A program made the translations under genes and the position numbers. Below are positions 1 through 42,700 of a stretch of DNA of 64,000 nucleotides, piece by piece (the stretch's first letter is position 1; each line of letters begins with the position of its first letter). The notes under the pieces were generated by a model. It ran no database searches. It was given only the letters and a program-made list of their open reading frames with translations, and was not told the origin of the DNA. The stretch covers positions 110,360,001 to 110,424,000 of the forward strand of contig OZ320314.1 of assembly GCA_976226885.1 (NCBI GenBank). Reading direction: 5' to 3'. Source of the DNA: Iphione sp. A-MEVVRFRX5. Its lineage: Eukaryota.

Positions 1-900
1 TTAGTAGTAGGAGTTATTAGAGTTGCAGTAATAATAGACATCGTAGTAGTAGTAGTACCAGTAGTATTCATCCAATCTCTTGGAAGCACAGATCAAAAGG
101 GCTGAGAGCAATTCGCCACCATCTCACTCAGCGTATCCCACCAAAGAGGCTTCCTTGCACTGGTAATCTGCCGCTAACCTTAATCTTTCTATCTACATTT
201 CTCACATGGTACACATAGCTGCAGCCTCCTCGACTAAGCTGTCCTAACGGGTCCTCCCCAAATCGCCTGTCCGATCCCCTTGATCACCCCCCAAAAACCG
301 CCGACCCGAGTGACAAAGAGAACAACCCGCCGGTAAGCTACTTAGGAAGTTAGGAGCCAGAAGCTGAGTGAACAGGCAATAGCATTGATCTTGGTTTTGG
401 GAGGAGAACAGCAGAGAGGCTCCCCTGAGGAGATTTTCTCCCACTAAATAATCTCAACTTACAGGCACCTGTCAACGACTGAGAAGACAGTCCAGTTGAT
501 AGTCATGTTAATCAAGCCCATGAATCCGATTCTCTTGGAGAAACAGCGAGCGAAAATCTCCGATTATCAAAAAGGATCTTCAACATAGATGCTGATATGA
601 ATATTGATAAAATATATACTTATTTAGGGAATAATCTCCCTTTGTGTCTACCTCCTCGTGCAGTGCACTACTTTCGATAGCCACCTGTCTGCAGTTGACA
701 GAAACGTTATAATCAGATTGGGATGATAAAAGGAATTCGTGTGGACCTAATCCTCTTTCTAACCCTCCGGGCATAACCTATTGCAGTCAAGAAACTATTC
801 ACGAGAAATGTATAAATACAGTATCTCTGTCTGGAAATTATTCCTACTTCGTTACTCAACAGTTTGATAATTAATGAAGAATGCTTGCTGTTCAAGGCTC
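1..900 (-). mobile_element. Possible 3' end of a degenerate LINE with (ACT)n-like tail
   Basis: Minus strand shows CSLCH and YVYHVRNVDRERL fragments, a stop, a short UTR and (CTA/ACT)n at 1-65. Similarity is weak. Confidence 0.3.
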
Positions 901-2359
901 CAGGGTTAGATAAGGGGAAGTAGTACGCTCCTAACCATGTGTACCAGGAAGGTCATATCCCAGAACATGTATATATATACATGTAAATATATGAGAGAAC
1001 GTGTATATACGTATTTACAGCACTCACGATGATTACGTTGACGATAGGTAAAGGGAGATTGATTAAAGTCGAATTAAACGTACAAAAATGTAATCGAAAC
1101 TCCCAGGATAAACTCCCACTTACCGGTCTCTATGTAAACTTCGATACACGTACAGTCGACAAACAAAAACTAAATTGTAGACTTCAAAACATGTTGGTGA
1201 AAACATCCACTATTTTCAGACAGCGAGGTATATGTTAATGAGTTAATGGAAGGATAATAGATACATCACCATGAATGTAAGATCATCATTCCGATAGAGG
1301 AGTATGTATAGTGCTGCTTACAAAGACGCAGTGTGGCAGTTCCTGGCAAGAGAGAGTATGAATCCCTCTCAGCCTCTCTATCTCGCTGGCTCCCTCACTC
1401 CCTCCCCCCTCCCTCCTGATCTCAAGAATTTATTACGATGGCGTCTGCAATAGGAACCTACCGATAGTAAAAAGGACATTTTGGAGAGAAGAACTTTGCT
1501 GGATTCCTAAAGATATGGGGACAGGTCAATCGCTCGATTAGCAACAATATAACAGAAGCCTCTCTGACTACAATGGTGACAGCGTGTGTGAGAAAAATTG
1601 CCCGAAGGAATTGCTCATGAACCTGCCTCAACCTGAAATGTCAGTCGCAATGTTTCCCTGTCCCAACTACATTAAGAACAACATGAAGTATTAAAGGCGT
1701 GTGCTTATATTACTGACGCGTAACGATTTGGATGAACTAGAATCATCCCCCCATCCATGACTATCCTCAACAAGTCTGCGCCTTTCCTCTCGGCTTAACC
1801 AGCTTTTCTGATAAAACTACCCGAGATAGCCGAAAGGCTTTCATGTACATCTACTATTCATGAAAGCCACGAGCCACAAATTTCAAGTATAGAGCACGAT
1901 ACGCGCAGTTTAAGTGACATTTCAAATGAAGCACTGGGACAACATGTGCGAGTATTCAGAGAACAGTCTTCTTTGGATATTAGTGTCGTCTGTCGGCTTA
2001 CTAATGCCTCGTTGGACTCTTTAAATGTATATTTAAGCAGAAGGATAGTCTCTCCGCGTTGCCTTGTAGGCAAGAATTCATTCATGAAAAGAAAATGTCT
2101 GGTGCAGGTTCCGGGTGCATCAGTGCATTTCATGAGTGCTTTGTTCTGCCCTCTAATTCATTGAATCTAACTGACAATTTGGTACACAATTTTTTGAAGA
2201 ACTGATATTATACAATACCTATATGGCATGGCTACAGGCAACATAGACGAAACCTAGATGGACACGCAATGTAAATGTAATTCAGCTTTGCTCGCTCTCC
2301 CTTCTTTACCAGCAAAAAAATGCTTTTGGAATTGATACCTGTTGGTTCCTATATCATGT

Positions 2360-2720
2360 TTAGCTGTAGGCTTTAATACAGCAGATGCATGGTAATGTTG
2401 TTTATCAAGGTGAAGCCCTTGGATTACATGTTATTCTTAAAATTAAACATATTTGGTTGCCATGGCAACAACGCCAGTTTCAAAGTGAGGCACAATTTCA
2501 TAATTTTACATCTAATTTACTCTAATTTACATTATTTGATGTAAGAAAGTGTTCAGCAAGTGATTTCCATCGTTCTGATACCTATTTTGTCTCTGTCTGT
2601 GATCTGGAACACATTTTGTCTTGACCTGTATGAAAACACATTTCTTACAAAAGTAGTGCATCACCATATGAATCAGCATCACTGATGCATCATGGAAAAT
2701 ACTAGAAATAGACATTATTA
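2360..2720 (+). repeat. Diverged interspersed repeat (partner at ~27880-28260)
   Basis: Shared ordered blocks TTACATGTTATT, GTTGC(C/A)ATGGCAACAA, TAATTTAC, TGTTCAGCA.GTGATTTCCA, TTCTGATAC, GACCTGTA and GCATCATGG. Confidence 0.65.
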
Positions 2721-3649
2721 TGATTGCTTCAAGAGTATTCATTAAATATGACTCCTAACAAAACAAAGTAACAATTTCCTCATCATTTTTATGGGAGAAA
2801 TCAACAAAAGAGAGTTGTTATTATATAATATATACATGAACTTTATGTAATAATTTTATAATATTATGTAATTATTGCATATAGTTCTGATCTTAATAAA
2901 GAAGGTTATAGGACATCATAAGTTACACATCTAGTATTAATCCCACTAATGATTCATTAAAAACTGCTGATGAGCTCTGGGGATAAATATTCTAGTGTTT
3001 CATAGAAATATTTTGATAATATAATGATAATTTATCTGTTATTTAATGTTTTGAAATATATTTGTATTACTGTGTCTACAAAAGTATGCAAAAATGCTGA
3101 ATTTTTAGGTTCTTACATGTCATGTGACTGCCTTTCCATGGTATCCGAGTGCATTTTCACAAAACATCAGGTGGCAGTGAATAGTCTGCAGTATGATCTT
3201 GTTTTACACAAAAAATAAACAAAATTCATCAAATATCACTAAACTAACTACAGGCTTCAAGCTTATCATCCACATATGTACCATAAGCCTATGAACGGTC
3301 AGGAAGGGGCTATGACATGTGTTCTAAATCTGATGGTTGTCATACATTTAGCACATGGTGAGATAGATACAATAATACAAACAGAGACCTGATAGACACA
3401 CCTCGCATTCACATGTTTTGTCCCAACAAAGAGGAAGATCATGTGTACACAGAGCAAAATATGTAAGGAGGGTCCAAGCCATAGATACTTTTTCACCAAG
3501 CATTCATGTAACTGAAAAGATTGAAAAGACAACAAAGGCTTATGGTATATAGAGGCAAGCCTCAATATCTGTAATTCGACATCAGTTTAATTCTGAACAC
3601 ATGTTATCGGTATGGAATTATGTATCTTATAAAAAATATATTCCATAGC

Positions 3650-5100
3650 GAATTCCCTCAATTTACAAACAACAATCTGTCACGCAGCAATTCCTTTTCC
3701 CACACAAAATACAGGATTCGTGTGAATCGCCCTACCTCCCACTCAATGTACGAGTTCCCTCCTTTCAAGATGGCAGCACGAGGCTCTAAAGGGTTGCAGA
3801 AGGTTGGGATGGAAGTGAGAGAAAGGGAAAGAAAAGGAAGGCCAAACTGAGAACGAGGAAGACAAAGCACACACTTGTCTCTCCTCAACCCCCCCCCCCT
3901 CCCCTTGAGGCTCATTTTTTTAAAGGAATCTCCTAAGTGACCTATCGCTGGGAGTATTGGACATTTTCCAACTTCACTTGTCTTTGAATTTGGGAAGCCC
4001 GGAGACATTTCTTAGCTACAGATCCTTGCAGACCATTAAGAAAATGCCTAAGAGAAGCACAAGGCGTTTAGTAGTTCCAGTAGTCAAAAACAAGTAAGGA
4101 TAGACAATGCGCAGGTCTCCAAGCTGTAGATAGTCCAGTTATGGGGCCCCATTTAGAAGAGCTTTCTTTTCACTAACAGTTTAAAACAATATATATAGTT
4201 TCTCGTGATCATGCGTCTTTCAAAGAGTCAACCTAAGACCCAGCTGTACGGATCTTTTGTACTGACAACATCTTAAACCTTTTTCAGGGTCATTCAGCAT
4301 TTCTCTCTATTTAGGATGTCTATATGCAACGACATAGTGCTGAAAAAACTACTTAAGATAATTGACTCACTATTTGCTTTCTAAACTCCTCCGCGTTAAC
4401 CAGATAAAACTGTGCACAGTAGAATCCATCAAATCAATTGTTATAATGATGGATAAGGGGCGATTATAAAGACTTCCCTCATATTTGTTATCGATGATTG
4501 CCCGGTTAAATGAAAATAGCTACCAGTCAAATAAGTCATCTTCCGTAAGCAATTTTCTTGGTCGAGCTTATGGAATGTAGTCGTAGTGTTCATTATAGTT
4601 AGCTCAAGATATCTAACAGAAGCATCTTCGTGCGGTGGTAGAAAAACTCACGGAGTGCTTTGATACAAGCAGGAGACCTCATTAGGCCTGCCTAGCTTTT
4701 TATAGTCCTCCAATACCTCCCTTAGCGCACCCTATTGGTCAAACCCAGGAGCGGCTTCAGCGGCAAATGTAAAACGAATCCCACGATAATAGAAATTATA
4801 AATACCTATTATAATTATTGTGTCAAACAATCTGGCAGCAGAAGAAATAACTGGAACAAAAAGCAGTCTGCAGTGAATTTAGGTCTCATGGCTATACTAA
4901 ATAGAGAATAGGCCTCAACCTCAGAAAATCCCTCAGATGCATCCACATAGCTAATCTATATATGCAGATTCAGGAAACAAAGCAAACGAACAGTTGAGCG
5001 ATGCATGAAGTGCCTATTTGATATTTGCTGACGGCAATAATTGTCCCTGCGAATCACCTGTTCCATCCAGGAAACGGTAATTTAGAACCAGCATTGTCAA
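3650..5100 (-). mobile_element. Degenerate L1/Tx1-like LINE ORF2 remnant (RT C-terminal part and zinc-binding tail)
   Basis: Minus-strand fragments GIRFTFAAEA (YADD-region-like), SVRYLELTI (KYLG-like), YFHLTGQSSITN (LSLTGR-like), DKCVLC and LYFVWEKELLRDRLLF (W.ERN.R.F-like) occur in the expected order amid many stops. Confidence 0.45.
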
Positions 5101-5838
5101 CACATTCAGGGTATTGGCAGTATTCTACCTTAGGTACAATGATATAGGTTTTATCTCGAAGTCAATATTACTAGCATCGTGATGTTATTATCCACAAGAA
5201 AACTCAAACGGCACAAGAGATTTACACATCGGACTATCAGCGAGAAAAACAGCAATTCATCAAACAAATCTTGATTCATATGAAAACAGCAGCCAAACGG
5301 TCAAAGGATAAAAATTGACCGAAAAAATAATAGTAAAGGTCGCATTTACTAGTCCGCGCAAACTTGATGTTCAGGCATATCCCATTTTAGACATTACTTC
5401 TAGGTTCTCATTGGTACTGGCTGAAACACTGTATTAATAGTGTAGCCATTCTCAGGTAAGCAGGCCTATCGAGCACGTTCTCCTTGTCCCCTGCTAATAT
5501 GCCTTAGCGAAAACTCCATCCAACCTATCGCCCCATCCACTTCTAGAATTAAAAAACCAAAGCAACAAACGTTATAGTCCTACTTTGTCATGTAAGAAGT
5601 GTACTGGTGTAACAGGTATAAATCAGCTTGGACAAAGTCGCTGTATGACCAGAGCAAAATAGTTTCACAACTTCCATAAGGAACAACTTTATAAAAACAA
5701 AGGGATCATACAGGTGATAATATATGACTGATCTGCTTCTGTATTAATTTATGCAAAACAATGCTGTTATCAGATATCTCAAAGTGTTCAGGCCATTGTA
5801 GAGATCTCAGTTTGTATCAACATTGCCTTTTTTATATA

Positions 5839-6013
5839 CAGTGGAGTCTCTATTTACGACCACCACTTGGGACCAAGCTAAAATGGTCTTATTGTGAATG
5901 TGGCATAAATGGAGTATCAGATGTATAGAAATGAACATTTTGGTACCCCTTTCAGCTGGTCTGAAATTGAGAATGGTCGCAAAGTGATGTGGTCATAAAT
6001 AGAGACTCTACTG
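5839..6013. mobile_element. 175-bp MITE, Tc1/mariner-pogo type
   Basis: 25-bp TIRs CAGTGGAGTCTCTATTTACGACCAC / GTGGTCATAAATAGAGACTCTACTG (2 mismatches); TA on both sides (5837-5838, 6014-6015). Confidence 0.9.
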
Positions 6014-6146
6014 TATTAGAGGTCCTGAGTTATACATAGGAACCTCATTATCCGGAGCACCTCAGGATATCAATATTTGTTATGGATAAAGAAAAATCCG
6101 GAATGTGAAAACGCGACTCATGCAACTCCTGGTGGGGAAAAAAGGC

Positions 6147-6350
6147 ATTTCATGAAGATTGAGGCAAATTCCATGGAGAAAGTGCTGAAAGACAGATATT
6201 TCATGGAGATTGAGGCAAATTTTGGGGAGAAGTGCCGAAAAATGATTATTTCATGGAGATTGAGGCAGATTCCATGGAGAATGTGCCAAAAAACTGCAAA
6301 TTTCAAGGAGAAAGTGCCCAAAAAGCATCAAATTTCAGGGAGAAAGTGTG
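6147..6350. repeat. ~51-bp minisatellite, about 3 copies plus decayed half units
   Basis: ATTTCATG(A/G)AGATTGAGGCA(A/G)ATT...GGAGAA(A)GTGC is repeated. Confidence 0.85.
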
Positions 6351-15200: not shown

Positions 15201-18200
15201 CTCAGACACAAGGAAAATTGGAGGGTGGGACAACAGCATTCGTTAGGTTCCCAGCTCTCCGCAAGGGGGGACCAGTTAGACTATGACTGGCTAAAAAAAC
15301 ACGCGTACACACGTACACATTAGCATTAACATCTCTACATGTTACTTTCCTGCAAATAATAAAGGTAGATTCTGACCACTAGAAACCACTGTCAGTCGTG
15401 TCTATTCTTAATTGGATGCCGGCAATCTATGCCCCACTGTTTTCTTCATCCGCTATAACAGAGATCCCTGACCACATGTGCCGTTAACGAACGCTCCTTT
15501 TGGTCAGGTGACCAGCAGGCTTGGTGCTAGCGTGGGAGCCTAGAAGGAGGGGACGGGGGTTAGTGTTGACCTCAGCGTTGGTCTGGTCGGATTACATCGT
15601 GTCTGACAAAAGCATGACCACCCCTGGAGGCGGACCCCTGCTGGAGGCTGGATTGAAGGGGAGCATGCGCCGAGTGCACTTCCCAAGCTATACAGATTGT
15701 ATGGCCAACGCCACAGGCTTCCTCCAGCCACAGCCCCTTTTCAGAGCTGCGTCAGATCAAAGTCACCTGTCTGATTCCTGTGGTTTTCCAGGAATGTTAT
15801 CAGATATAGTCCACGCATTTTATTGTAATTCTTCAAGACAATGGACCTGACTGAATTGTTCTTCAGGAGAATGAATCAAAGAAATAATCATCATCTAAAT
15901 AGAGCAGCAACCTCATGGCACAGCTATTCGTGTTCCCCTGAGTGACGTGAATTTTAGTGACACCTAGCGGGTAGGCAGTATAACTAGACCCTCATTGCAG
16001 TAGGCTCCCTCGACTGTGGACGGACATTTCTATAATCCCCTTCAAACATATCCACGTTACATGCATATATTAGTGGTCTAATATTCTCCAACACAATATT
16101 CTTTTATTGTCTTCTCCTAACGGTATTACATGTTTACTGATGTTACTACACGGAGGCATAGAGCATGTTTCAGAATAACAAGAAACGCACCAGCAATGCC
16201 CAACTTTTAACACATTGAAAACATTTTTCTGATTTGTATAGGTAAAACCTTTGGAATCATCATCAGCCTTTCTTTCCTGTGGAGAGTGAGGTGGCTGAGA
16301 ATTCTTCGCGCGTTTCTATATTGACTTTTTATCATCGCCATCTCTATCACTATCATGCGTGATGTGTAAAAAACGCTGTATTCGATGCCCCTCCGCGTGA
16401 TGACAGCCCCTACAAGCGAGAGGTCGATGATAACGGCGGTCGGCCAGCCCGTCCCCGTCCATCGACCATCGATCGGCTTCCTGTGTGGAGGGGGGTGGGG
16501 GGATTGGGAAGGGGGAGGGGGAATCATATTTAACGATTACCGAACCAGGTCGGACCTTCTCGAGCTTATAGAGGCTGTTCTCTTAGGGAGGAAAACACGC
16601 ATGATCCGTACAAGCAAGAACGCAAAACGCGTAAAACAAAAGCTCTAAAAGCCATAGACTATGCATTTGAATGTATTAGTCCTTTGTGTAAAGATAAATG
16701 TTGAAGTTATAAACGTGGTCAAGTAGTATCAGAGGAAAATGTAACGAAATGATGCATTTGTTTCTTCAACGGTAATTTGTACTTCTGTTCCACGTGTTTA
16801 AATCCAGCAGATCTATTCTCATCCACACAATGCTTTCCGCCTTTGTAGTCATTGGAAGTATGTGGTGCCTATAACATATATCAACTTTATTTATTTTTCC
16901 TGTTTCTACAATACGACACAGCTTTAATGAATGATATTTGGGAACAACAGTTAACCATTGGGTAGCAGGGACGAATGCCCGTAAATGAATTGTCTTTGAG
17001 AGAACCTCGAGGAAGAAGTGGTTCGCGTCTGATCCGCTAGGGGGAGGCATCTGAGTCACTCGCCCGGCGGAGACGGGTCTTCAAACCTGCTCTCCAAACG
17101 CAATCGCTCAATTAGGATGTTCACAAATGTGTCCAATATACTTTGCATAATCATATCGTCACTGACATCCGCCAGAGGTTTTTATCCACGTCCTGCAAGC
17201 ATACCAGGGTCGATACCTCAATTTCCTTACCATAAAAACGCCTTAGAAAAGGATAAAAAGAGACAAGACTGATCATAATCACGGTGACACTCATAAAACC
17301 CTGCTATAAAGTAATATTCATCGCTGCGCCTACCCATTACAACGTTAACGCCAGGAGTGACCCAGTTAGGGAGCGTATAATTAAGAGAGGCCTGTTACAA
17401 GCCGGCATTCCTCAGTCAGCACCCTGCTTTGATTAACATTTATACATGTACAGCCATTCTGTCTTCCATAGAACATCTGTTTCAAACATTGTTTCATCTT
17501 AAAGTAATACCAATGTAAGCCTTACGTTCTGTTTTGTGTGTTTTGTGGCATGCTATCGCTAGCAATCCGAGGAAGTAGATCCAAGCATCAGAGCAAATTT
17601 GCCGGCCTGATGAGTTGACCGAGGTCTCACCTAGCGGTATCCGCGCGAATCACTTTCTAAGCGCCACTTTCTGACGCCCGGCCAGCGTACAGCAAGCAGG
17701 TGATTGATTGCTTATCGATCAGCTCTCTTAGAATAAGTCGTTCAAATGGCCCCGTGTACTTCAACGAAAACTAATATCTAACAAATAGTACAGGATCTTC
17801 TGAAATTAGTCGTGGCCGCTCATTCGTAGTTTTGATGAGTGCTTCATTTGCCTTTGTACAGACTGCACTTTTATGAACGTAATAATGCCCCCAACATTCC
17901 GGGTCCATATAGTGTTCTACTGTTTCATTGCATATATTATTAAATTGTTGATCAGGCAAAGGCCATATGAAGTCAGTCTTCAGATTTCTTCATTTACTAA
18001 GATTCAGGCTCTCTGAATACTAATGCTTATAACGAGAAGCTGTTTTTCTAACACAACCCCTTCCCCCCCCCCCAATAACGAGTATAGTTCGGGGAGCATC
18101 CGATGACAATATAGCGCATACGGATTCCTAATGAGACTCTCCTTAGTGTACAAAGAAAATTTCCAAGTCATAGGGGCGTCAATATGCTCAGGTCCCCAGG

Positions 18201-21200
18201 AAGTCTGTGTTTCCGGTAATATGTTTTAAAAAATCTAGGTCGGTATGTTTTAACACACAAATGTCACACTTAAAAGGCTAGACATTCTCTCTCAAGCCTG
18301 GAAACATTACTTCTACTGCTGAGATGATGATAATGTTATCATTATGAAAGCTACTGATCTAAGGAGCATAATGGTGTATTGTATGTGTCTATAGTTGTAT
18401 TCTCAAGATATCAGCAACAGTTATTTTTTTTAAATCGGGGTTTGGTTATCAAAAATAGACGTTTTTAGTATGCCTCATCAAGTACATTTTGATGGCTATA
18501 GCTCATTGTTTCCATGAATATAAAGATAAACTTTGTCAATTCTTTTAGAAGATATCTTTTAGAGAACCATCACCTTTTAGAGAACCATGAACTGTCGATT
18601 ACCTACACACCGGCCAGATACAAACAGAAGTGACATCCAACCTACGACAGAAGGAAACCACTCGTTTATCAGTATCGGCTTAAGTACGTAATCCTGGCTA
18701 ACTCTAGCACTTTTCGATAAATTCGACACAAATACGTTAACAACTGTGATAGTTTGCATGAAATTAAGACGAGGGAAAAATCATAATAAAACGTCAAGAC
18801 TTGAGGCAACTATGCCTCCTGCGTCTATTAACGACAGTCATTTCGTGGCGAGGGCACGGAGTAATGGCTGTATATGGATACAGTTATTCATGTCAGGGAT
18901 CCATTACAGATGATATCTCTGATATTACGCTGGCGTGTCCTTTGTAATAGACGATATTCCAATTTTACCAGGTGATAAGTAGTAAGGTACACACCATAAA
19001 AGCGGGCCCTCCTCCAGTACGTAACAAATTCATCGATAATAGAAATCGGGTTGCCATGTAAGACTGTTGGCCGATTCGGGCATACATATACACCATTTGT
19101 AAATATATGCCACCATATGCATGTACATCTGAAACAACCTTTTCATTGTCACTGTTCAGAACGGAATTTATAAATCCTATATGTAAACCAGCGATGATAA
19201 GATCATATCATGTACACTGTGTGTGCAGAGACAAAACACGTGTAACTGTTCTGCATTGACATATTACAAAGCATTACATGGTCCATCGAAATCCCAAACG
19301 AGCACCATCACTTCGCCAGTTTACCGTCCAAGGATGGTACATAACATATAACGTGCAATTCAATTTGATGAAGAATTGGACTTTTAACCTATTCACCAAT
19401 CTCGAATTGTAGGAGATGGGTGGCCAGAGAAATTCGGTAGACGTACTTTACTGGGCTTGTCCGAGTATCGGCTTGAAGGAAGGATATAGCTCCAGTCCCA
19501 AAAGGTCACTAAACGGCGCCCTACGTTATAATAATGATCCTATCGTGTCTTCCGAACCTGTATTATATCATACTTCATAGTAAACAGGAGAAAAACTGAA
19601 GTCAATAGGGCCGAAATACCAGTAGATGGGTTGAGCCAGGCTGGCTATCATTTATTAGTGGTTATTGAAGGGACCTGGAAGCTTAAGGCTATGTAGGACA
19701 TCAAAAAAAGGACGCTGATAATGAATCATACAGACGCCCTAAACCCGTATCTGTAATGGGTTGATTGTCACAGGCTGAGTTGCGGGGGGGGGACGCTGAA
19801 TTCCCCCTTACCCCCCTACCCACCCACCACTACGTAACCGCCTCTTGACTTCGTCATTGCACTCAGAAAACCGTCGGTAGTATCACTGATGCGATTACAT
19901 GTGCGGCTTCTGGGCTCGGCGGACAACATTGACAAATACTTTAATGACTTCCAGCGATGCGTTCAGACCCTAACTAAAGCGGTGACGGTAACGATTTATA
20001 TGGCAGTGCTATAAATCACGATCGAGAAACTGTAATCTTTTTTTTTCGGAAGAGATTTAATGAAATCACCTGCTAAATACACGACACATCAAGGACAATG
20101 TCTGTATTCCGATTAGAACAGAGAGATTAACTTTCTTGTTCATGGCAACACAGCAATACTTCAAGGACAACTGGGGACGTGTACCTCAAATCGAGGGCTT
20201 TTAGAGTCATTTTTTGAAAAGCTACGTATAAAACGACAGACCCACTGCGAACATACATTCTTAGTGGCGTTATTTCTTACCTACGAGTGATACATAATGG
20301 CTTTTTAGGCTCTGGTGCGCACAGACAATTGATTACAGAAAAAATAAGGGTATTCATTTGACAGAATCGAAAAAAATATCAAATCCGAGGCGGCCATAGA
20401 GCCTTAGCTTTGAAAAAAAGCAGCTCTGAACAACATATTGCTATATTTAAGTATCTACATTATCTCTTCTAAAACGTGGGTTGTTATCTGTCTTTGGTAT
20501 GTCTCTTTACCACACAGAGAGGTGGACAAAATTAAATGGGAGGTGATAGGGAAACTCTACGTTTAACGTCGTCTGTCACATACTTCTTTGGCAATCCTTC
20601 GTTAATTTCCCACTTATATAGATTATGTCCAATTTGTAGTCCAGGAAATGACTTTTGACATTAAACCTCAGCATCCCTAAGTGTGTGTGCTCATGAAAAT
20701 AAATCGATCCAATATCTTTAGGTGTGAAGTTCAAAGGCTAACGGGATTTCTTCATCGTGATCTGGTAATTGCGTAATCCCACACACCGCTTTCGGGGGAG
20801 CAACGAAGAGTTAAAGACTGGCTTACAGTCACAGTAACAGTTTCAGGCAACTGTAACAAGTGTGGTAGACTGTCATAAATATGCTATTAGTGGCAGTGCA
20901 TGCAGAATGAATGTACTAATTGACCTATATGTCGATCGTAACTATGAATATATAACGGCTGTAAATATATAGATATACATATATACATATACATCGGTGT
21001 ATATACATGTACTTAGCCCTATGAAAAGGTTTCGGCATTTTTATCCCCCAAACCACTGAAATACCATCCATGTAGTATCTTTTGGGTGCGTTGGAAATTT
21101 ACGCCTCACAGATATCCAGAGTTCCCCTAAAACATGCGCTAGACATGGAGACACATCCGTGGAAAATGGAAGGCCCCATTCCAAAACGCTACATGTTCTT

Positions 21201-35154: not shown

Positions 35155-36283
35155 CTGCCAACCATGGACTCCCATCCCACTTACTGAAACACTGAAAAGG
35201 GATACTTCAGAGGAGAAGTAGCATTCACTCCCTTATTCTGTTCTGGTCTATCAATGTAATTCAGATTTAGATAGAATGACCACCATTATAATGTCATGTA
35301 CTTTACATTGACACACATTTACAACAAGTTATACCATTTCTTGGAGTTTTGCCTCATATAATGACACATTTTCAATGATAACTTATTCTAATGAGGTATG
35401 ACTATATATATATATATGGTCTGTAAGCTATAACATGAAAATTTTGTTCAGCATAACTTGAAAGTGATACCTACTGAGTTTAGCTGTCTAGAGTTGGCCA
35501 TATTGTGCATACATCGACGTTAGCCATGGAGTCTCGATAGAATTCCTTGTAAAATTTAGATTCTCATACTTTAACCCCTTAAGGTCCGTGCGGAATTGAC
35601 GCATTTTAGTGGGGTGGGGAGCTACTCGTGGTAAATATGTTGTATTTTTGGATTGGTTGCGAATATTAACACCAAATTTGAACTAAATGAAAGAGGAGAG
35701 ATTTGGCTTTAATTTTATATATAAAATGCGATATTGACATGAATCCATTTATTAATATGAAGGCTATTTATTCTGAAATGTGCATGGAAAATCATCATGA
35801 AAATAACACATCGTAGTTTCAATTGGAAAAAAAGAGTGGAAATATTATTTTTAGAGGTAGGGTGTGAGCAGACGAAATGTAGCTAATGAAAAAACCTTCC
35901 AAACGATATATAGATCAATCCCCTACGTGAATTGAGTGAATCGCCATGAGTTCTGGTAGATGGGGCTAGTTGTTCCGAAAAAGTGATGGTTCAACACTAT
36001 AAGCACAGATGGAGCCTGTGGTACTGCGTGATGTTGCGTCATGCTTGGAAAATGTATGTAAATTGTTTATTATATTTGTATTTTTTGGTGATGATGATAG
36101 AAACAAATGCCCAAGTAGATGAGAAACCTGTATACAATGAATTTATGGAAAATTGGCTGGTTATTATTGATTGTACCATGTCGTAAGTGACACCTCGTGC
36201 TTCCTGTGTTGACGTCACGTCCTGCAGAAGAAGCGACCCAGCAAGTATCTGATGAAAATCACTGTTATTTGTAAACATCCACA

Positions 36284-37139
36284 ATGGAAACTCTTCATGT
36301 AGCCTTCCTTGAAAAAGGGTAGGTATTTGTGCATGTCCATATCTCATTTTTAATAATTATATTAATTGGGATATGCCCAGTAGCACTCTTTGAAAAGTAC
36401 CTTGTGCCAGCCTGCTGTACGTTGCCGACCGAGTGAAATACACGCGTTAGCTTGTGATGTAGCGCCTGTATGTAATGCATGTGCCAATTACCTATGTATG
36501 CTGATATATTACTATCGCAGTATTTAATTATACCAAAAATTGCTGATTTACAGGTATGCCATGCCAGATTTCATTGTGCATGTAATTCGTCGTGGTACTA
36601 GCAGAAAGCAGGTCTACAAGCGACTATGGGCCGTAACAGTTGTGAGTGTAACTTCACTTCACCTCCTAGATGTAAAATATTGCGGATGATATTATATGCG
36701 TACAAAACATAGAAAAATGCTTGGAATCAGTGTTATTTATTATTTGACTGCTTGCTCTCTTCATTAGTTCGTTGGAAAAATCGGTAACGGGAGGACAATA
36801 TCATTCCCCAGAGAATTGAAGGAAGCAGTTAGAGAACAATTCCCCGTCTCTGCAGCTGGAGCGTATGACTACCAGTATGACAACGACAATGGAAAAGTGA
36901 GTTACTAAGTGGCAAAGAAACAGGCATACATTTATTACATATAATTGTACATTGAGAAACTGTCCATAAATGATGTTTGAGAACTATATGAGCCCATTGT
37001 AATTTTGAAATAAGTAAAGAACATCAATCTCACTATTGTTTGACACTAACATGATCTCTGGTACATATTGAACTTTCAGGCCTATCATGTATCCCTTGAG
37101 GAGTTGGCCACCATCGATTATCCACCGGTGAAATGCTAG
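36284..37139 (+). CDS. Putative second (passenger/accessory) gene inside the piggyBac: 4 coding exons, 103 aa, P2X7-ballast/KolX-like motif
   Basis: Exons 36284-36318, 36554-36641, 36768-36896 and 37080-37139, with donors GTAGGT/GTGAGT/GTGAGT and acceptors TTTACAG/TTCATTAG/CTTTCAG in matching phases, give an uninterrupted ORF METLHVAFLEKGYAMPDFIVHVIRRGTSRKQVYKRLWAVTVFVGKIGNGRTISFPRELKEAVREQFPVSAAGAYDYQYDNDNGKAYHVSLEELATIDYPPVKC*. Start context ACAATGG. The true 5' end is uncertain. Confidence 0.6.
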
Positions 37140-37151
37140 GATCCTGAGGTA

Positions 37152-38106
37152 CTACTTCCTTCTGCATGTTGCCAACACTTGCCTCCGCTCCGAGTGGAAT
37201 GAGGCAGAATGCCACAAGGCCATACAGCTGCGCTCTCCTGTCATGCATAATCCAACCTGGCATGCAGGGTGTTGGCAGAGCCATTTGGTTTTGTGTTCCT
37301 GACCATGTAACACAAAGCAGACCTTGCAATTTCGTCGTTTGTCTGTCATGATGGGAATGTGCCTGCTCACATACATCTCATCACTGTACGTTATCGAAGG
37401 GCCAGACCCCTGAGGAATATCCTCAGAGGCCGCAAGTGAAACAAGTTGACGGATAAGCTCTTCACGAAAACAGAGATGTGAATAGTCCAGGGGTCGTTGT
37501 AGCATTGGTTCATTGGGATGACTAGCACGCCATTCTCTGAAGAGGATGTGTGAGTTGAGAATGCTGATGTCCAGTAAATGGAAAAACAGGGTTTTCCACC
37601 ATCTCTGTGATTTAATCAATACGGAGTAGGGTTCTAGCAACTGGTCTGACAGGTCTACGCCCCCCATTCCTTTGTTATATTCAAAAATGGCCTGGGGCTT
37701 TCATACCATAATCTTCCTGTTTTGACCATTGGGGTCCTTGATGTTTCGATGCACCATGGTATATTCATGCCCAGCATGAAATGTGCTCACAGCGCAAACT
37801 GGCTTCGTATCCATCCATTGGAGGAAGAGCACTTCTCCTTCCCTTACATAACGCATGGCACCTCTCCGTGCTGTTTTCTGCCAGACTTTATCCTTCATCA
37901 CCACAGGGAACCCTCTTCTGGTAGCGAGTGTTGTCCCACACATGAGGATACCCTTCCGGTACATATCTCTCAGAAGAACTGCAGAAGTGTAGAAATTATC
38001 GGTGAAGAGCTTGTATCCTTGATTGACCAATGGTTGTAATAGTTGGTTGACCACATCAAATGCTAGTCCTTGGGCTCCTGGTTTATCTCGTTTCCCTTTG
38101 TAGATG
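37152..38106 (-). CDS. piggyBac transposase exon 5 (second and third catalytic Asp, Cys-rich tail), interrupted by TGA
   Basis: Acceptor TTTGCAG|; (D)IYKGK...; ORF-track ORFs 37701..38054 and 37152..37667 are in the same frame, separated by one TGA and 11 sense codons. Confidence 0.92.
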
Positions 38107-38249
38107 CTGCAAATTAGAAGGGACGATACCTATAACTAATGGTACTCAATTATTTGTGACTCAGCAAAAAGACATATCAAACACAGACACAAAGAGTGTA
38201 ATACAGAAGACCAATTCAATTTTGTAAAACAGTGATAAATTTGACTTAC

Positions 38250-38522
38250 TCAAAGTCTATGGTGTAACCTGAAGTGGATTCACTTAGGCACCATAACTTG
38301 AAGCCGAATCGGACTGGTTTATTTGGCATGAATTGTCTCAGACCAGATCGCCCCTTTGACTTGACCATTCTCTCGTCAACTGAGACTTTTCTGGTTGGTT
38401 GCAGGAGACATTTGGACATGGCCCTGACATGATGCCATAACGGGTACAGCTTGCTGAGTTTGTCATCTGGTGTGTCCATTCCGGGATCAGATACATGCAT
38501 CATTCCAAGGAGCGCCTTGAAT
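38250..38522 (-). CDS. piggyBac transposase exon 4 (first catalytic Asp)
   Basis: Acceptor ATCCAG|; (R)FKALLGMMHV...DKLSKL...VSVDERMVKSKGRSGLRQFMPNKPVRFGFKLW...GYTIDF; donor |GTAAGT. Confidence 0.92.
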
Positions 38523-38690
38523 CTGGATCACAATATTACAGTTCTTTGCATTATTCAACTCAGTAGAATAATTGGGCATTTATGTGTTGATGGACTTTTC
38601 ATGATTCGCTTTCTGAATAAACATTTTTTCATAAATACAAATCACCATTAGTAATGTGTGCTATTTTACACCTCACTCATATGAACTCAC

Positions 38691-38920
38691 CTGGTCCTTG
38701 ACATCAGCCGTTTGACCAGGCCTCCTGAATACATGTCGCACGTTGCCCAGTACCTCAAAATCGTGGGTATGCAGATAATCCCCATAATGATGACAATTGT
38801 GAGGAAGCAGTACATTTCCCTTGGAGTGACTTCTTGCCATGAACCGTCATTGGTGATGGCATACGAGGGCTTCTCCGATATATTGATCATGGCATAAGTG
38901 TTTGTATTGTCACATAAAGT
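38691..38920 (-). CDS. piggyBac transposase exon 3
   Basis: Acceptor TTTTTTTCAG|; TLCDNTNTYA...WQEVTPREMYCFLTIVIIMGII...YW...LMSRT; donor |GTGAGT. Confidence 0.9.
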
Positions 38921-39059
38921 CTGAAAAAAAAATGTCCTATGTAGAATGCAACACTCTTATGTAACACTCAATGGAAGTCCTCCTGTATAAAGGTATGGGA
39001 GTGATAAGATTCACACAACAGAATTGCAAGCACAGACGAAAAAACACAATTCCTCTTAC

Positions 39060-39225
39060 TTGTATCATGTCTGGATTGAAGAACAACCCAAATACATCCA
39101 CTGCCTTGGAGAACATGCTAGGCCCCTGCCTGGTGCCATGGTTTGCTAGATAAGGCCCAGGCGGTCGTTCTGGCTTGAATGGTGCAGTCGATGGTGGACT
39201 ATCCTTATCTTGGTATGTTTTGTAC
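39060..39225 (-). CDS. piggyBac transposase exon 2
   Basis: Acceptor CATAG|; translates (R)YKTYQDKDSPPSTAPFKPERPPGP...AVDVFGLFFNPDMIQ; donor |GTAAGA. Not in the ORF track. Confidence 0.85.
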
Positions 39226-39312
39226 CTATGATTTATGGAAAATCAATGAAAGGCATTTAGTACACATCACAACAACAGCATAAAGTGCATTACTGCATAC
39301 GTTACTACTGTG

Positions 39313-39389
39313 GGATACGTGGCGTAATGGTTAGGATGCTTGACTTTTACACTAGGGCCCGGGGTTCGCGTCCGGCTCGTACCTTTTTT
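39313..39389 (+). ncRNA. tRNA-like (tRNA-Gln-like, degenerate) Pol III unit inside transposase intron 1
   Basis: 71 nt from GGATACG to CGTACC, with A box TGGCGTAATGG, near-consensus B box GGTTCGCGTCC and a T6 run immediately after. Anticodon and T stems pair poorly, so it is not a canonical tRNA. Confidence 0.6.
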
Positions 39390-39521
39390 CTTTTTGAGGG
39401 TGGGAATGTGTATAACATATTTCTGACAATAATCTTAGTAATGGCTTATGTAAACATCAAAAACAGCAACAAATGTTTTCCATTCTATTATGAATAATGG
39501 ATTTTCTCATCAAATCTCTAC

Positions 39522-39739
39522 CTGACATTTCCTGCTCCAGGCGGATCTTTCAATTTGACATACATTTCGTCACTGTCTTCGTCCGACGGGGGTCCAGTTG
39601 CACATAATTCTTCATCAAGTCTGTCTTCTTCCTCTGCTGATAAGATGTCTTCATCTATTCTTACCAAATTTGTCACTCCAAACCCCTTTGCAATTAATTC
39701 TCTGGCTTTCTCAGCCGATGAACGTTTAGGGCGGGACAT
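39522..39739 (-). CDS. piggyBac transposase exon 1 (acidic N-terminus)
   Basis: MSRPKRSSAEKARELI...; donor AG|GTAGAG at 39521, phase 2. Confidence 0.8.
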
Positions 39740-42700
39740 ACTGACGTCTCCAGCGTCACGCAGTGGCAGGTTGTTGAGATACCAGTGTGCAACTCTCGTT
39801 CATTGTATTATGAATTAATTAATTATTATTATTTTTATATAACTTCCCTTTACATGTCTCATAAAATCACTTTCAAATATAACTCAAGCCTTTTTTCGGA
39901 TTTAAAATATGATTTATTATGCATACACAACCGTAAGCTTATCGAACATATATGTCCGATAAGCCTATGGACGGACCTTAAGGGGTTAACATCCCTCCAA
40001 AATATATGAGAATATTGAAGACCCATTCACAAACAAATATTCCAAAGCCTAATACTTAGACTTATATCTAGCTTAAATGGAAAAATGTTTTGACAAATAA
40101 AACATTACATGTATATCATCAATAATCATTTATACACAGGTGTACTAAAATCCTGACGCACTATCATCATCCACTTTAGGACATTTCAGAAATCTAATAG
40201 GATAACTACAATGATACACTTATACAATGTCTTTATGGAAGTGGTATTTTTTATACATTTTCGTCTCGGAGAGGATAAAGGAAGTGTATTGTTTTTCTTC
40301 AGAGCAAGAGGTTCCCATGGTTTAAGCGGCAAATGGGCTTTACGCATTCAATTCATGACCACATTGACATTATGGATAGGTCAAATTACATTAATTTCAC
40401 TCGTCCATCTACAATAAAGCATTTCATTCTACATGGCGTGTACTGTATAAGTAATCCATATCGTGCAAACATAAACCAGAATTCAATGTTTTTCTGTACA
40501 GAATATGCGTATCATTCAACCACTGACGAATATGAAACGTGGCCAAGAGGGACACATGAATGTATGGACAATACAGGGCAGAAATACGCTGAATCAGGTT
40601 AGATCGGTTGGTTTAAGGCAGGCCTGCTCCTACATTAGTACAGCCTGTCTCTTTCCCGATAGATCTGTGTAAAATTGTCACAAAGGCAAATTGTGTCATT
40701 TTTAAAGAAATCCCTATAAACCTTTTAGGAAGCTAGACATCATCTGCCTCTACAGGGAAACGAATGCAAACGTGAAAGCAGTTCACGCATCCGCAGATGA
40801 ATAGAATATGCACACGCCGAGGTTCCATCAAATATAAACATAAACATAAACCTAGGAGCAGAAAAAGTAACACTGAAAACGACCTTTAACCTTATGCACT
40901 TCTTTGCGTTGAAATGTAATATATTATTGACCGCCATTTCCTCAATTTACTAAATCATATCTATAGCAATTGTCTGATATAAGCCACATAAAAAAAACGA
41001 ACTACATGTGTGGTATCCGATGGTGGTTAAAAATATCATCATTCCCGGAGGGTGTTCTGCTCACTGGAAGGTCGGGGGAGCAGCTCAGGGGAGACGGCGG
41101 ATCAAAGGCCTCCTATTCTAGCGGCTGATAGATGCTCAATGTTCCTGGTTGGATGCCTGCAATAGAACCTGTAACTGGATTAGCTGCGAATGAGCAGAAT
41201 GGCTTTGGAAAGTGAGGGGCGAGCTACTCGATCTCGACCTGCTCGGCCGGGCAGGAGCGAGCGAGAATGGCTGCGGTAGACAGAGCAGCTGGCCCGGGAA
41301 AGGTCATCTACTCAACGGGAGGTCCTAGCGGCGGGACTGAAAGCCGATAGCGGGACACGGAGACACTCTCTCGCAGGGTTAACCCCTGTAGGTAGGCTTC
41401 CCTTTTGACGCTCTGGGCATGGTCGGACGTCAGAGTGTTGGGAATGGAGCAATATCTCTGTTGACTCAATGAGCGCTATGTTACTCGACGTCAGCACGTC
41501 ACAGAAAGGCGCCATTCTCCACGGTTCTATTATTCTCTGACAGTGGGCGCTTACGTTCCTCTAAAACGTCCAGTCGCCAGATATATGCAATGCAGTAGGC
41601 TAAATGTCGTTTTCTGGTACTGATAATGTTTAAATGGAATATATTGCCAATTACACTGACAGCCAGAAATCCTTAGTGAGGCATTGGTTCTCCTGGAATG
41701 CTTGTATATCGTATGTATTGTTTACATTTATCAGAAGTTCCATACAGAACAGAGCATATTATGATTAACTATGGGTTATATTTGTGTTGCAATTATCATT
41801 ATTCTGCATGTTATTTTACGAAGGTCTTAACGTACATGTAATTATATGTGCTCCTGTATTACGTATAATGGCGGTAAAGCAGCGGTGTGGTATGGACACT
41901 GCTTTCATTTTGTTAAGAGCATGCCACACTTTCTGGCGTGAGATGCATGCATCACTACTGTCTATATGGTGTTATGTTTTAACAGAACTCGCCCATGGTT
42001 ATAAAACGCCGCCCTAGCCCACGATTCCGTGTAGTTATACCTCTGCATACATACATACTTTTCGCGGAAGCAAGTTCATGGCATAAACGGTAAATGTTCG
42101 AATTGCCTCGCTCACCTGACGAAGCCTCGCGGTCCATGACGTGCCTTAAATGACAGCCTTCCAACTCCCCACCACCAACCCATCCTCCTTCCACCTAGAA
42201 TCTATCTGTCGAACATGTGACACTGTTTTCACATAACTGCTGTCAATGTTAATGGTGAGGATGGGACGCGGAAGTGGCTGGCAACTGCCTGTGCGTGAGA
42301 GAATGAATAGTAGATGGTGGCGAGGTCAGCAGTCGACCTCCATCGATCTGTGGCAGGCAACTGGCTGCCGGAATATTAAACAGTTTAAATCTCCCCATCA
42401 ACCAAGTGCACCCGCTGTGGACACTGAGGAAACGCCACCCGTCCCTTCAAATATTGTGTCACATGTAAGATCTCCGTCTTTTTTTTTGTCATAGCCATTG
42501 GGTCTGCCTGGCTTCATTATAAACATGGCTGCCATCGTTCATCTCCGAGGAAAGCGGGTAGGATGATTTTAATTAAAATATCCGGGACCTTCTATGACTA
42601 TTGAGAAACAAAATAGAGGAATTGAGAAGGAGGTGTGAAAAAAATATGATTGCAATATTAAATGAAACGGACCATTAGGTAGCAGGTTTAGAATTTTTTA

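Follow-up and report, generated by a model that had tools for sequence, protein, structure and literature searches.

A piggyBac element with a likely second, spliced gene and a marginal similarity of its product to KolX and the P2X7 ballast domain

A 4,411-bp piggyBac element occupies positions 35575-39985 of the window, i.e. of the whole 64-kb stretch of DNA that was analysed, and between its ends it carries, besides the gene of its transposase, what is likely a second, spliced and convergent gene. Our best explanation of the locus, to which we give a probability of roughly 0.55, is that a two-gene piggyBac family is represented here by one recently inserted copy, and that the protein of the second gene is a diverged C-terminal third of the KolX / P2X7-ballast domain (Pfam P2RX7_C, PF20478). 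Obtained directly for this explanation were the element boundaries, both gene models, the composition signature of the exons and a sequence similarity in a fixed register.

The piggyBac transposon is a mainstay of genome engineering, and it is usually presented as having a single gene. The first-pass annotation of this DNA had likewise treated a transposase-only coding capacity of canonical piggyBac elements as established, a statement that needs qualifying because KolX-like second proteins of piggyBac elements were published in 2022 (PMC9587614). The locus described here is a further example of that two-gene kind and not a new kind. It adds one animal, intron-bearing case to a brief observation and, with its marginal homology statistics, is to be read as a lead rather than as a discovery.

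Element boundaries and transposase gene

The ends of the element are defined by a perfect 19-nt inverted match, TTAACCCCTTAAGGTCCGT, at 35571-35589 and 39971-39989, for which 0 matches are expected by chance. The match consists of the TTAA target-site duplications (35571-35574 on the left, 39986-39989 on the right) and of terminal inverted repeats that are perfect over 15 nt. The left repeat, CCCCTTAAGGTCCGT (35575-35589, plus strand), lies at the end nearest to the 3' end of the transposase gene and pairs with the right repeat (39971-39985, minus strand), which is adjoined by a subterminal imperfect palindrome at 39931-39970. TTAA duplications, 5'-CCC...GGG-3' terminal inverted repeats and a PF13843 transposase with three catalytic aspartates assign the element to the piggyBac superfamily. 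Its perfect ends indicate that the copy is young, and a self-comparison of the 64-kb window revealed no second copy of it. Two short stretches elsewhere in the window may belong to the same piggyBac group, either as isolated ends or as miniature relatives: GTTAACCCCTGTAGGT at 41378-41393, which looks like the TTAA-CCC end of the element, and positions 3259-3312, which are 78% identical to the right subterminal region at 39935-39988. Of the host sequence, a 364-aa ORF on the minus strand at 21783-22874 matches Pfam ANF_receptor with 83 bits and represents a large receptor-gene exon, by which the window is shown to be of animal origin.

The transposase gene was modelled from stop-to-stop segments, tblastn with related full-length transposases and splice-site context. 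The model comprises five exons on the minus strand (39522-39739 with the ATG at 39739, 39060-39225, 38691-38920, 38250-38522 and 37152-38106), separated by four GT-AG introns of 139-296 nt, and yields a frame of 1,842 nt or 613 codons. Four pieces of the deduced protein match PF13843 (DDE_Tnp_1_7; Pfam, E values from 1e-15 to 3e-6), and the catalytic motifs VDE, TDNFYTS and MGGVD are all present, the last of them with the third catalytic aspartate in exon 5, which also encodes the C-terminal Cys-rich region. The same exon contains a TGA in frame at codon 431 (37701-37703, minus strand), located between ...RKIMV and KPQAIFEYNKGMGGVD and directly preceding the KPxxxxYNxxMGGVD motif. Due to this single in-frame TGA the present copy is broken and not autonomous. 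The GC content of the transposase exons is 46.8% versus 34.9% for the introns.

Compared with canonical piggyBac elements such as T. ni piggyBac and those of the PGBD type, the element shares the TTAA duplication, the CCC...GGG repeats, a PF13843 transposase with DDD motifs and the C-terminal Cys-rich region. It differs in that its transposase gene is cut by four spliceosomal introns and is interrupted in this copy by the premature TGA, and in that the element continues for 1.58 kb past the transposase stop, with a second, convergent gene in this part.

Structure of the second gene

The second gene is confined to the 1.58 kb that separate the left end of the element from the transposase stop. 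On the plus strand, four exons with a total of 312 nt join into a stop-free frame of 103 aa. The coding part of exon 1, METLHVAFLEKG, is found at 36284-36318 and ends in phase 2 before the donor GTAGGT. Exon 2 (36554-36641, donor GTGAGT) encodes an R29-K30-x-x-Y33 motif, exon 3 (36768-36896, donor GTGAGT) encodes the core GKIGNGRTISFPRELKEAVREQFPVSAAGAY, and exon 4 (37080-37139) closes with the stop codon TAG at 37137-37139. In their context the donors read AGG/GTAGGT, GTT/GTGAGT and AAA/GTGAGT, and the acceptors tttacAG, tcattAG and ctttcAG, where the AG follows a pyrimidine-rich tract in all three cases. Translation and splice sites thus agree with the four plus-strand exons, canonical phase-compatible junctions and unbroken 103-aa ORF that the first-pass annotation had proposed. 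Its distance between the two convergent stop codons was likewise reproduced: a 12-bp spacer (37140-37151) separates the TAG at 37137-37139 from the stop of the transposase gene (37152-37154, minus strand).

Upstream of the ATG, the in-frame TAA recorded earlier is indeed present at 36272-36274. The segment 36183-36283, which directly precedes the ATG, has a GC content of 45.5% and includes the perfect, CRE-like palindrome TGACGTCA at 36210-36217, 67 bp 5' of the ATG. Judged from these features, the segment may be the promoter or the 5'UTR of the second gene. Only four donors of the type GT[AG][AG]GT occur on the plus strand of 35575-37151, and three of them are those of the gene model. The fourth (GTAAGT at 36183, following 35986-36182) can be joined to exon 2 in phase and would then give an alternative frame of 157 aa, so that a different first exon ending at this donor may exist; the regional GC content of 34.5% speaks against coding. 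Additional upstream exons, for which the exon-like segments 36009-36053 and ~36118-36182 had been put forward together with a longer ancestral protein, were rejected, albeit with low certainty: the GC content of 35986-36182 is that of noncoding sequence, 36009-36053 cannot be joined in phase, and no Cys-rich ballast motif is found upstream of the second gene within the element.

Similarity to KolX and the P2X7 ballast domain

Sequence comparisons tilt the balance towards a kinship of the gene-2 protein with KolX and the P2X7 ballast. The strongest pairwise match was obtained with the tail of piggyBac-2_GrCh_2p, one of the published second proteins of piggyBac elements: BLASTP gave 23.5 bits and E = 2e-4 over the core GxxGxGxxxxxPxxxxxxxRxxxPxxxGAY, the Smith-Waterman score of 50 was reached by 2 of 5,000 shuffled sequences (4e-4), and among 2,949 six-frame segments of the window the exon-3 frame ranked first against this protein. 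Five of seven KolX tails from Kolobok elements gave shuffle p values between 0.004 and 0.012. The peptide is no nearer to GrCh_2p, with its score of 50, than to canonical Kolobok-type proteins, for which Smith-Waterman scores of up to 49 were obtained. The pairwise similarity to P2X7 sequences was not significant, as 734 to 3,894 of 5,000 shuffles reached the score, and neither was the shuffle score against Nanor; piggyBac-14_PI_2p showed no similarity to the peptide (3,896 of 5,000 shuffles).

Averaged over 120 PF20478 proteins, the Smith-Waterman score of the peptide was 38.4, compared with 24.7 ± 1.9 for shuffled sequences, 2 of 2,000 of which reached it (p ~0.001). Residues 29-74 align in one constant register that ends a median of 6 residues before the C-termini of these 120 targets. 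Within this register R29 meets an arginine in 97 of the 120 proteins, Y33 a tyrosine in 92, G44, G47 and G49 a glycine in 114, 110 and 104, P55 a proline in 109, R63 an arginine in 109, F66 a tyrosine or phenylalanine in 113, P67 a proline in 109 and Y74 a tyrosine in 106. The C-terminal motif of the family, R-x-x-A-Y / G-x-L-G-K-G-x-R / P-x-C / R-x-x-F/Y-P / G-x-Y, is therefore reproduced in order and spacing with the exception of the cysteine, and E57 is aligned with a family Cys in 107 of the 120 targets. A MAFFT alignment with GrCh_2p and three KolX tails recovered the same invariant columns as the pairwise register and placed ETLHVAFL, with family-like spacing, opposite the D-x-x-V-L helix of the family. 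The seven conserved zinc-coordinating cysteines of PF20478/KolX are absent from the peptide, whose single cysteine is its last residue.

Profile-based comparisons gave a less favorable picture. At E ≤ 10, neither the whole 103-aa peptide nor exons 2 and 3 taken singly matched any Pfam family; the gathering threshold of P2RX7_C is 23.5 bits and the positive control GrCh_2p reached 28.8 bits. With an HMM of 10 sequences from Fig. S6 of the 2022 paper (PMC9587614) the peptide scored 5.4 bits (conditional E = 1.3e-3) and ranked 7 of 2,950 six-frame segments of the window, where the reference scores were 50 bits for GrCh_2p and 9 bits for PI_2p. An HMM built from the 120 PF20478 proteins did not match the peptide at E ≤ 50, and hhalign against 88 of the 120 returned P = 0.013 and a probability of 3.4%. 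By these profiles the peptide is not a formal member of PF20478. The parallel to the ballast core that the first-pass annotation had drawn thus stands as a reproducible similarity in a fixed register, with the shuffle statistics and the GrCh_2p match given above, and is not supported as an assignment to the family; the comparison with the P2RX7_C profile, which the same annotation had proposed, ended without a match. phmmer found no match of the peptide in the PDB. A search of the ESM Atlas with exon 3 alone gave no usable match (best 0.77), and a metagenome scan with the peptide produced 404 pattern matches, 0 of which were confirmed. A word-indexed protein search returned no candidate among proteins of 57-180 aa sharing three 5-mers; this blank result says little, because the search covers only proteins of that length with three common 5-mers.

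A real, element-borne gene could nevertheless encode a protein unrelated to KolX and P2RX7_C, with the likeness over 46 residues being due to chance or to a convergent basic, glycine-rich motif. All profile-based tests fail or stay marginal, the zinc-site cysteines that are the hallmark of the family are missing, a 34-aa segment elsewhere in the window equals the score of exon 3, and the evidence for the gene itself does not hang on homology. Yet chance or convergence would have to account for a register that stays fixed at the extreme C-terminus of 120 family proteins and brings 10 conserved positions into agreement, for shuffle p values of ~0.001 and 4e-4, and for a location inside a piggyBac element, exactly where the literature places KolX-tail genes (PMC9587614). 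We therefore regard an unrelated protein as unlikely.

The 34-aa open segment begins with RIRIPNETLLSVQRKFPSHRGV and is located at 18115-18216 on the plus strand; its score equals that of exon 3 against the 120 P2RX7_C proteins. It also has a glutamate at the position of the family's Cys, and no remnant of a piggyBac transposase is found nearby. The segment may be what is left of another KolX-tail gene, or it may have arisen by chance.

Chance occurrence of the spliced frame

Splice sites, spliced-ORF controls and base composition are independent of homology and make it likely that the piggyBac element harbors a second gene, spliced and convergent, as had been claimed in the first-pass annotation. 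In the spliced-ORF control, donors were limited to GT[AG][AG]GT and acceptors to AG after pyrimidine-rich tracts. Under these limits, 2 of 72 chunks of equal size from the remaining window, both strands considered, held a spliced ORF of at least 103 aa, as did 3 of 300 Markov-1 random sequences, i.e. ~1-3% of the controls overall. The exons of the second gene have a GC content of 45.8% versus 34.6% in its introns, values near those of the transposase gene. When the exon layout was placed at random 8,073 times, 0.35% of the placements reached the exon-minus-intron contrast of +0.113 that results from these values (p = 0.0035).

Should there be no second gene at all, the frame and its splice-like sites would be a chance arrangement in a long 3' flank of the transposase gene that had been picked by eye. 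Spliced ORFs of this length do arise by chance in 1-3% of 1.6-kb stretches, and the layout was picked out of 128 kb of strand. However, the splice sites are strong and phase-compatible, the GC contrast between exons and introns equals that of the adjoining bona fide transposase gene, the best match to the KolX tail (GrCh_2p) in the whole window falls at the same place, and 1.58 kb of extra sequence lies within perfect inverted repeats. A chance arrangement is accordingly quite unlikely, distinctly more so than a real gene for an unrelated protein.

Comparison with known systems and origin of the gene

McCarthy and colleagues reportedly described, in 2019, the cytoplasmic ballast domain of the P2X7 receptor at residues ~395-595 of the rat and human proteins. 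We know of no KolX protein with a known function. The KolX protein of the Kolobok lineage Kol0 matches residues 476-595 of P2X7, and the statement in the first-pass annotation that the Kolobok protein has the ballast fold was correct (PMC9587614). The P2X7 residues R546, H547 and R578 contact GDP, and the F581-P582 motif is situated in the same tail of ~50 residues (Rump et al. 2020, PMC7016195). Among the GDP-contact residues only R546 and R578 are conserved across Metazoa (PMC7016195), and it is with these two that R29 and R63 of the peptide align. The likeness to the P2X7 ballast is alignment-based and distant and concerns its last ~50 residues. In contrast to the receptor tail, the present protein is a stand-alone protein of 103 aa and has no zinc site; the two were compared by sequence alone.

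The KolX proteins of Kolobok and other members of PF20478, including zebrafish Nanor, resemble the peptide in the motif R-x-x-A-Y ... G-x-L-G-K-G-x-R-x-x-P ... R-x-x-F/Y-P ... G-x-Y, which is in register. As in the present element, the Kolobok protein is borne by a TTAA-targeting DNA transposon beside a DDE transposase. The present peptide differs by the absence of the Cys-rich N-terminal half and of the zinc-site cysteines and by two small indels; furthermore, its host superfamily is piggyBac, and it stays below every profile threshold.

The closest published counterparts are the cysteine-poor KolX-tail proteins that were reported in 2022 to be encoded by piggyBac families (Kojima & Bao, Mob DNA 13:24, PMC9587614), namely piggyBac-2_GrCh_2p and piggyBac-14_PI_2p, whose hosts are a red alga and an oomycete (Data S6, PMC9587614). 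These families and the present element have in common that a second protein is encoded between piggyBac inverted repeats besides the transposase, and that this protein is similar to the KolX tail, here with marginal strength. Unlike the algal and oomycete proteins, the present one is encoded in an animal genome by a gene with three introns and is more diverged, and while GrCh_2p passes Pfam P2RX7_C, the present peptide does not.

As a further explanation of the same similarity, the four exons could be a fragment of a KolX-like gene of the host, or of a Kolobok element, that was captured at the DNA level (transduplication) and is carried as cargo without a role. Such a capture would be expected to retain introns, as is the case here, the domain is represented by its C-terminal part only, and P2RX7_C genes are abundant in invertebrate genomes (PMC7016195). 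Against a captured fragment stands a frame that runs from ATG to stop and covers the domain from helix to tail with family-like spacing. An identity of ~30% to canonical members and the loss of the cysteines fit poorly with the idea that an element whose inverted repeats are perfect had captured the gene recently, and the piggyBac families of the red alga and the oomycete bear the same kind of truncated protein (PMC9587614). Cargo without a role is, in our view, very unlikely, even slightly more so than a chance frame. A reading in which the exons are part of a host gene that extends across the insertion was rejected, because they sit inside the perfect inverted repeats.

Proposed role of the second protein

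Under our preferred reading, a two-gene piggyBac family, the gene-2 protein would be a diverged, zinc-site-less C-terminal third of the KolX / P2X7 ballast domain in which the family positions outside the zinc site were kept, namely R29, R63, Y33, the G-x-x-G-x-G turn, P55, F66-P67 and Y74. We hypothesize that it is an accessory factor encoded by the element and expressed from a promoter of its own, which would be situated in the 0.7-kb region that separates the left end from the ATG. The retained arginine/tyrosine pocket might bind a phosphate-bearing ligand, e.g. a guanine nucleotide, and the factor might act in trans on transposition or on its control, with or on the transposase.

The arrangement of the two genes bears on their transcripts as well. 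The nearest AATAAA on the minus strand (36936) falls in intron 3 of the second gene, and on the plus strand no AATAAA or ATTAAA occurs for 660 nt past the gene-2 stop. Due to the position of these signals and the distance of 12 bp between the stops, the two mRNAs are predicted to overlap tail-to-tail as an antisense pair, which could possibly feed a control by small RNAs.

A recurrent accessory gene that is shared with Kolobok and related to a domain that P2X7 acquired would suggest that TTAA-specific transposition has a cofactor or regulator that is still unstudied, and it would give the orphan ballast/KolX domain a testable setting. More broadly, animal piggyBac lineages might stably keep the cysteine-less KolX-tail gene as a working accessory module that serves both Kolobok and piggyBac, two unrelated TTAA-targeting superfamilies, and from which the P2X7 ballast derived as well. 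We consider this wider scenario improbable, if slightly less so than a chance origin of the frame. If true, it would indicate that TTAA-type transposition has some common requirement, e.g. a nucleotide-dependent control, that could be tested in piggyBac assays.

Relatives of the transposase and their neighbourhoods

In a search of 1.8 billion representatives the nearest transposases did not exceed 46% identity over the last exon (best 45-46%), and the named ones among them belong to Biomphalaria, fishes, ticks and a sea urchin. Eight related loci, taken from ENA, JGI and Logan contigs, NCBI assembly GCA_024449465.1 and Biomphalaria glabrata, were examined with tblastn and a KolX HMM. A KolX-like neighbour of the transposase was found in 0 of the 8, so that the homologues beside related piggyBac transposases which the first-pass annotation had suggested looking for did not appear in this set. 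One of the sequences, an ENA metagenome contig (L001, noted at 1838-3125 and 4908-6192), has no KolX-like sequence after its transposase, which is a piggyBac transposase with 41% identity to the present one. It additionally contains Mutator-like (PF20700) ORFs and a reverse-transcriptase-like ORF and appears to be a TE-rich eukaryotic contig.
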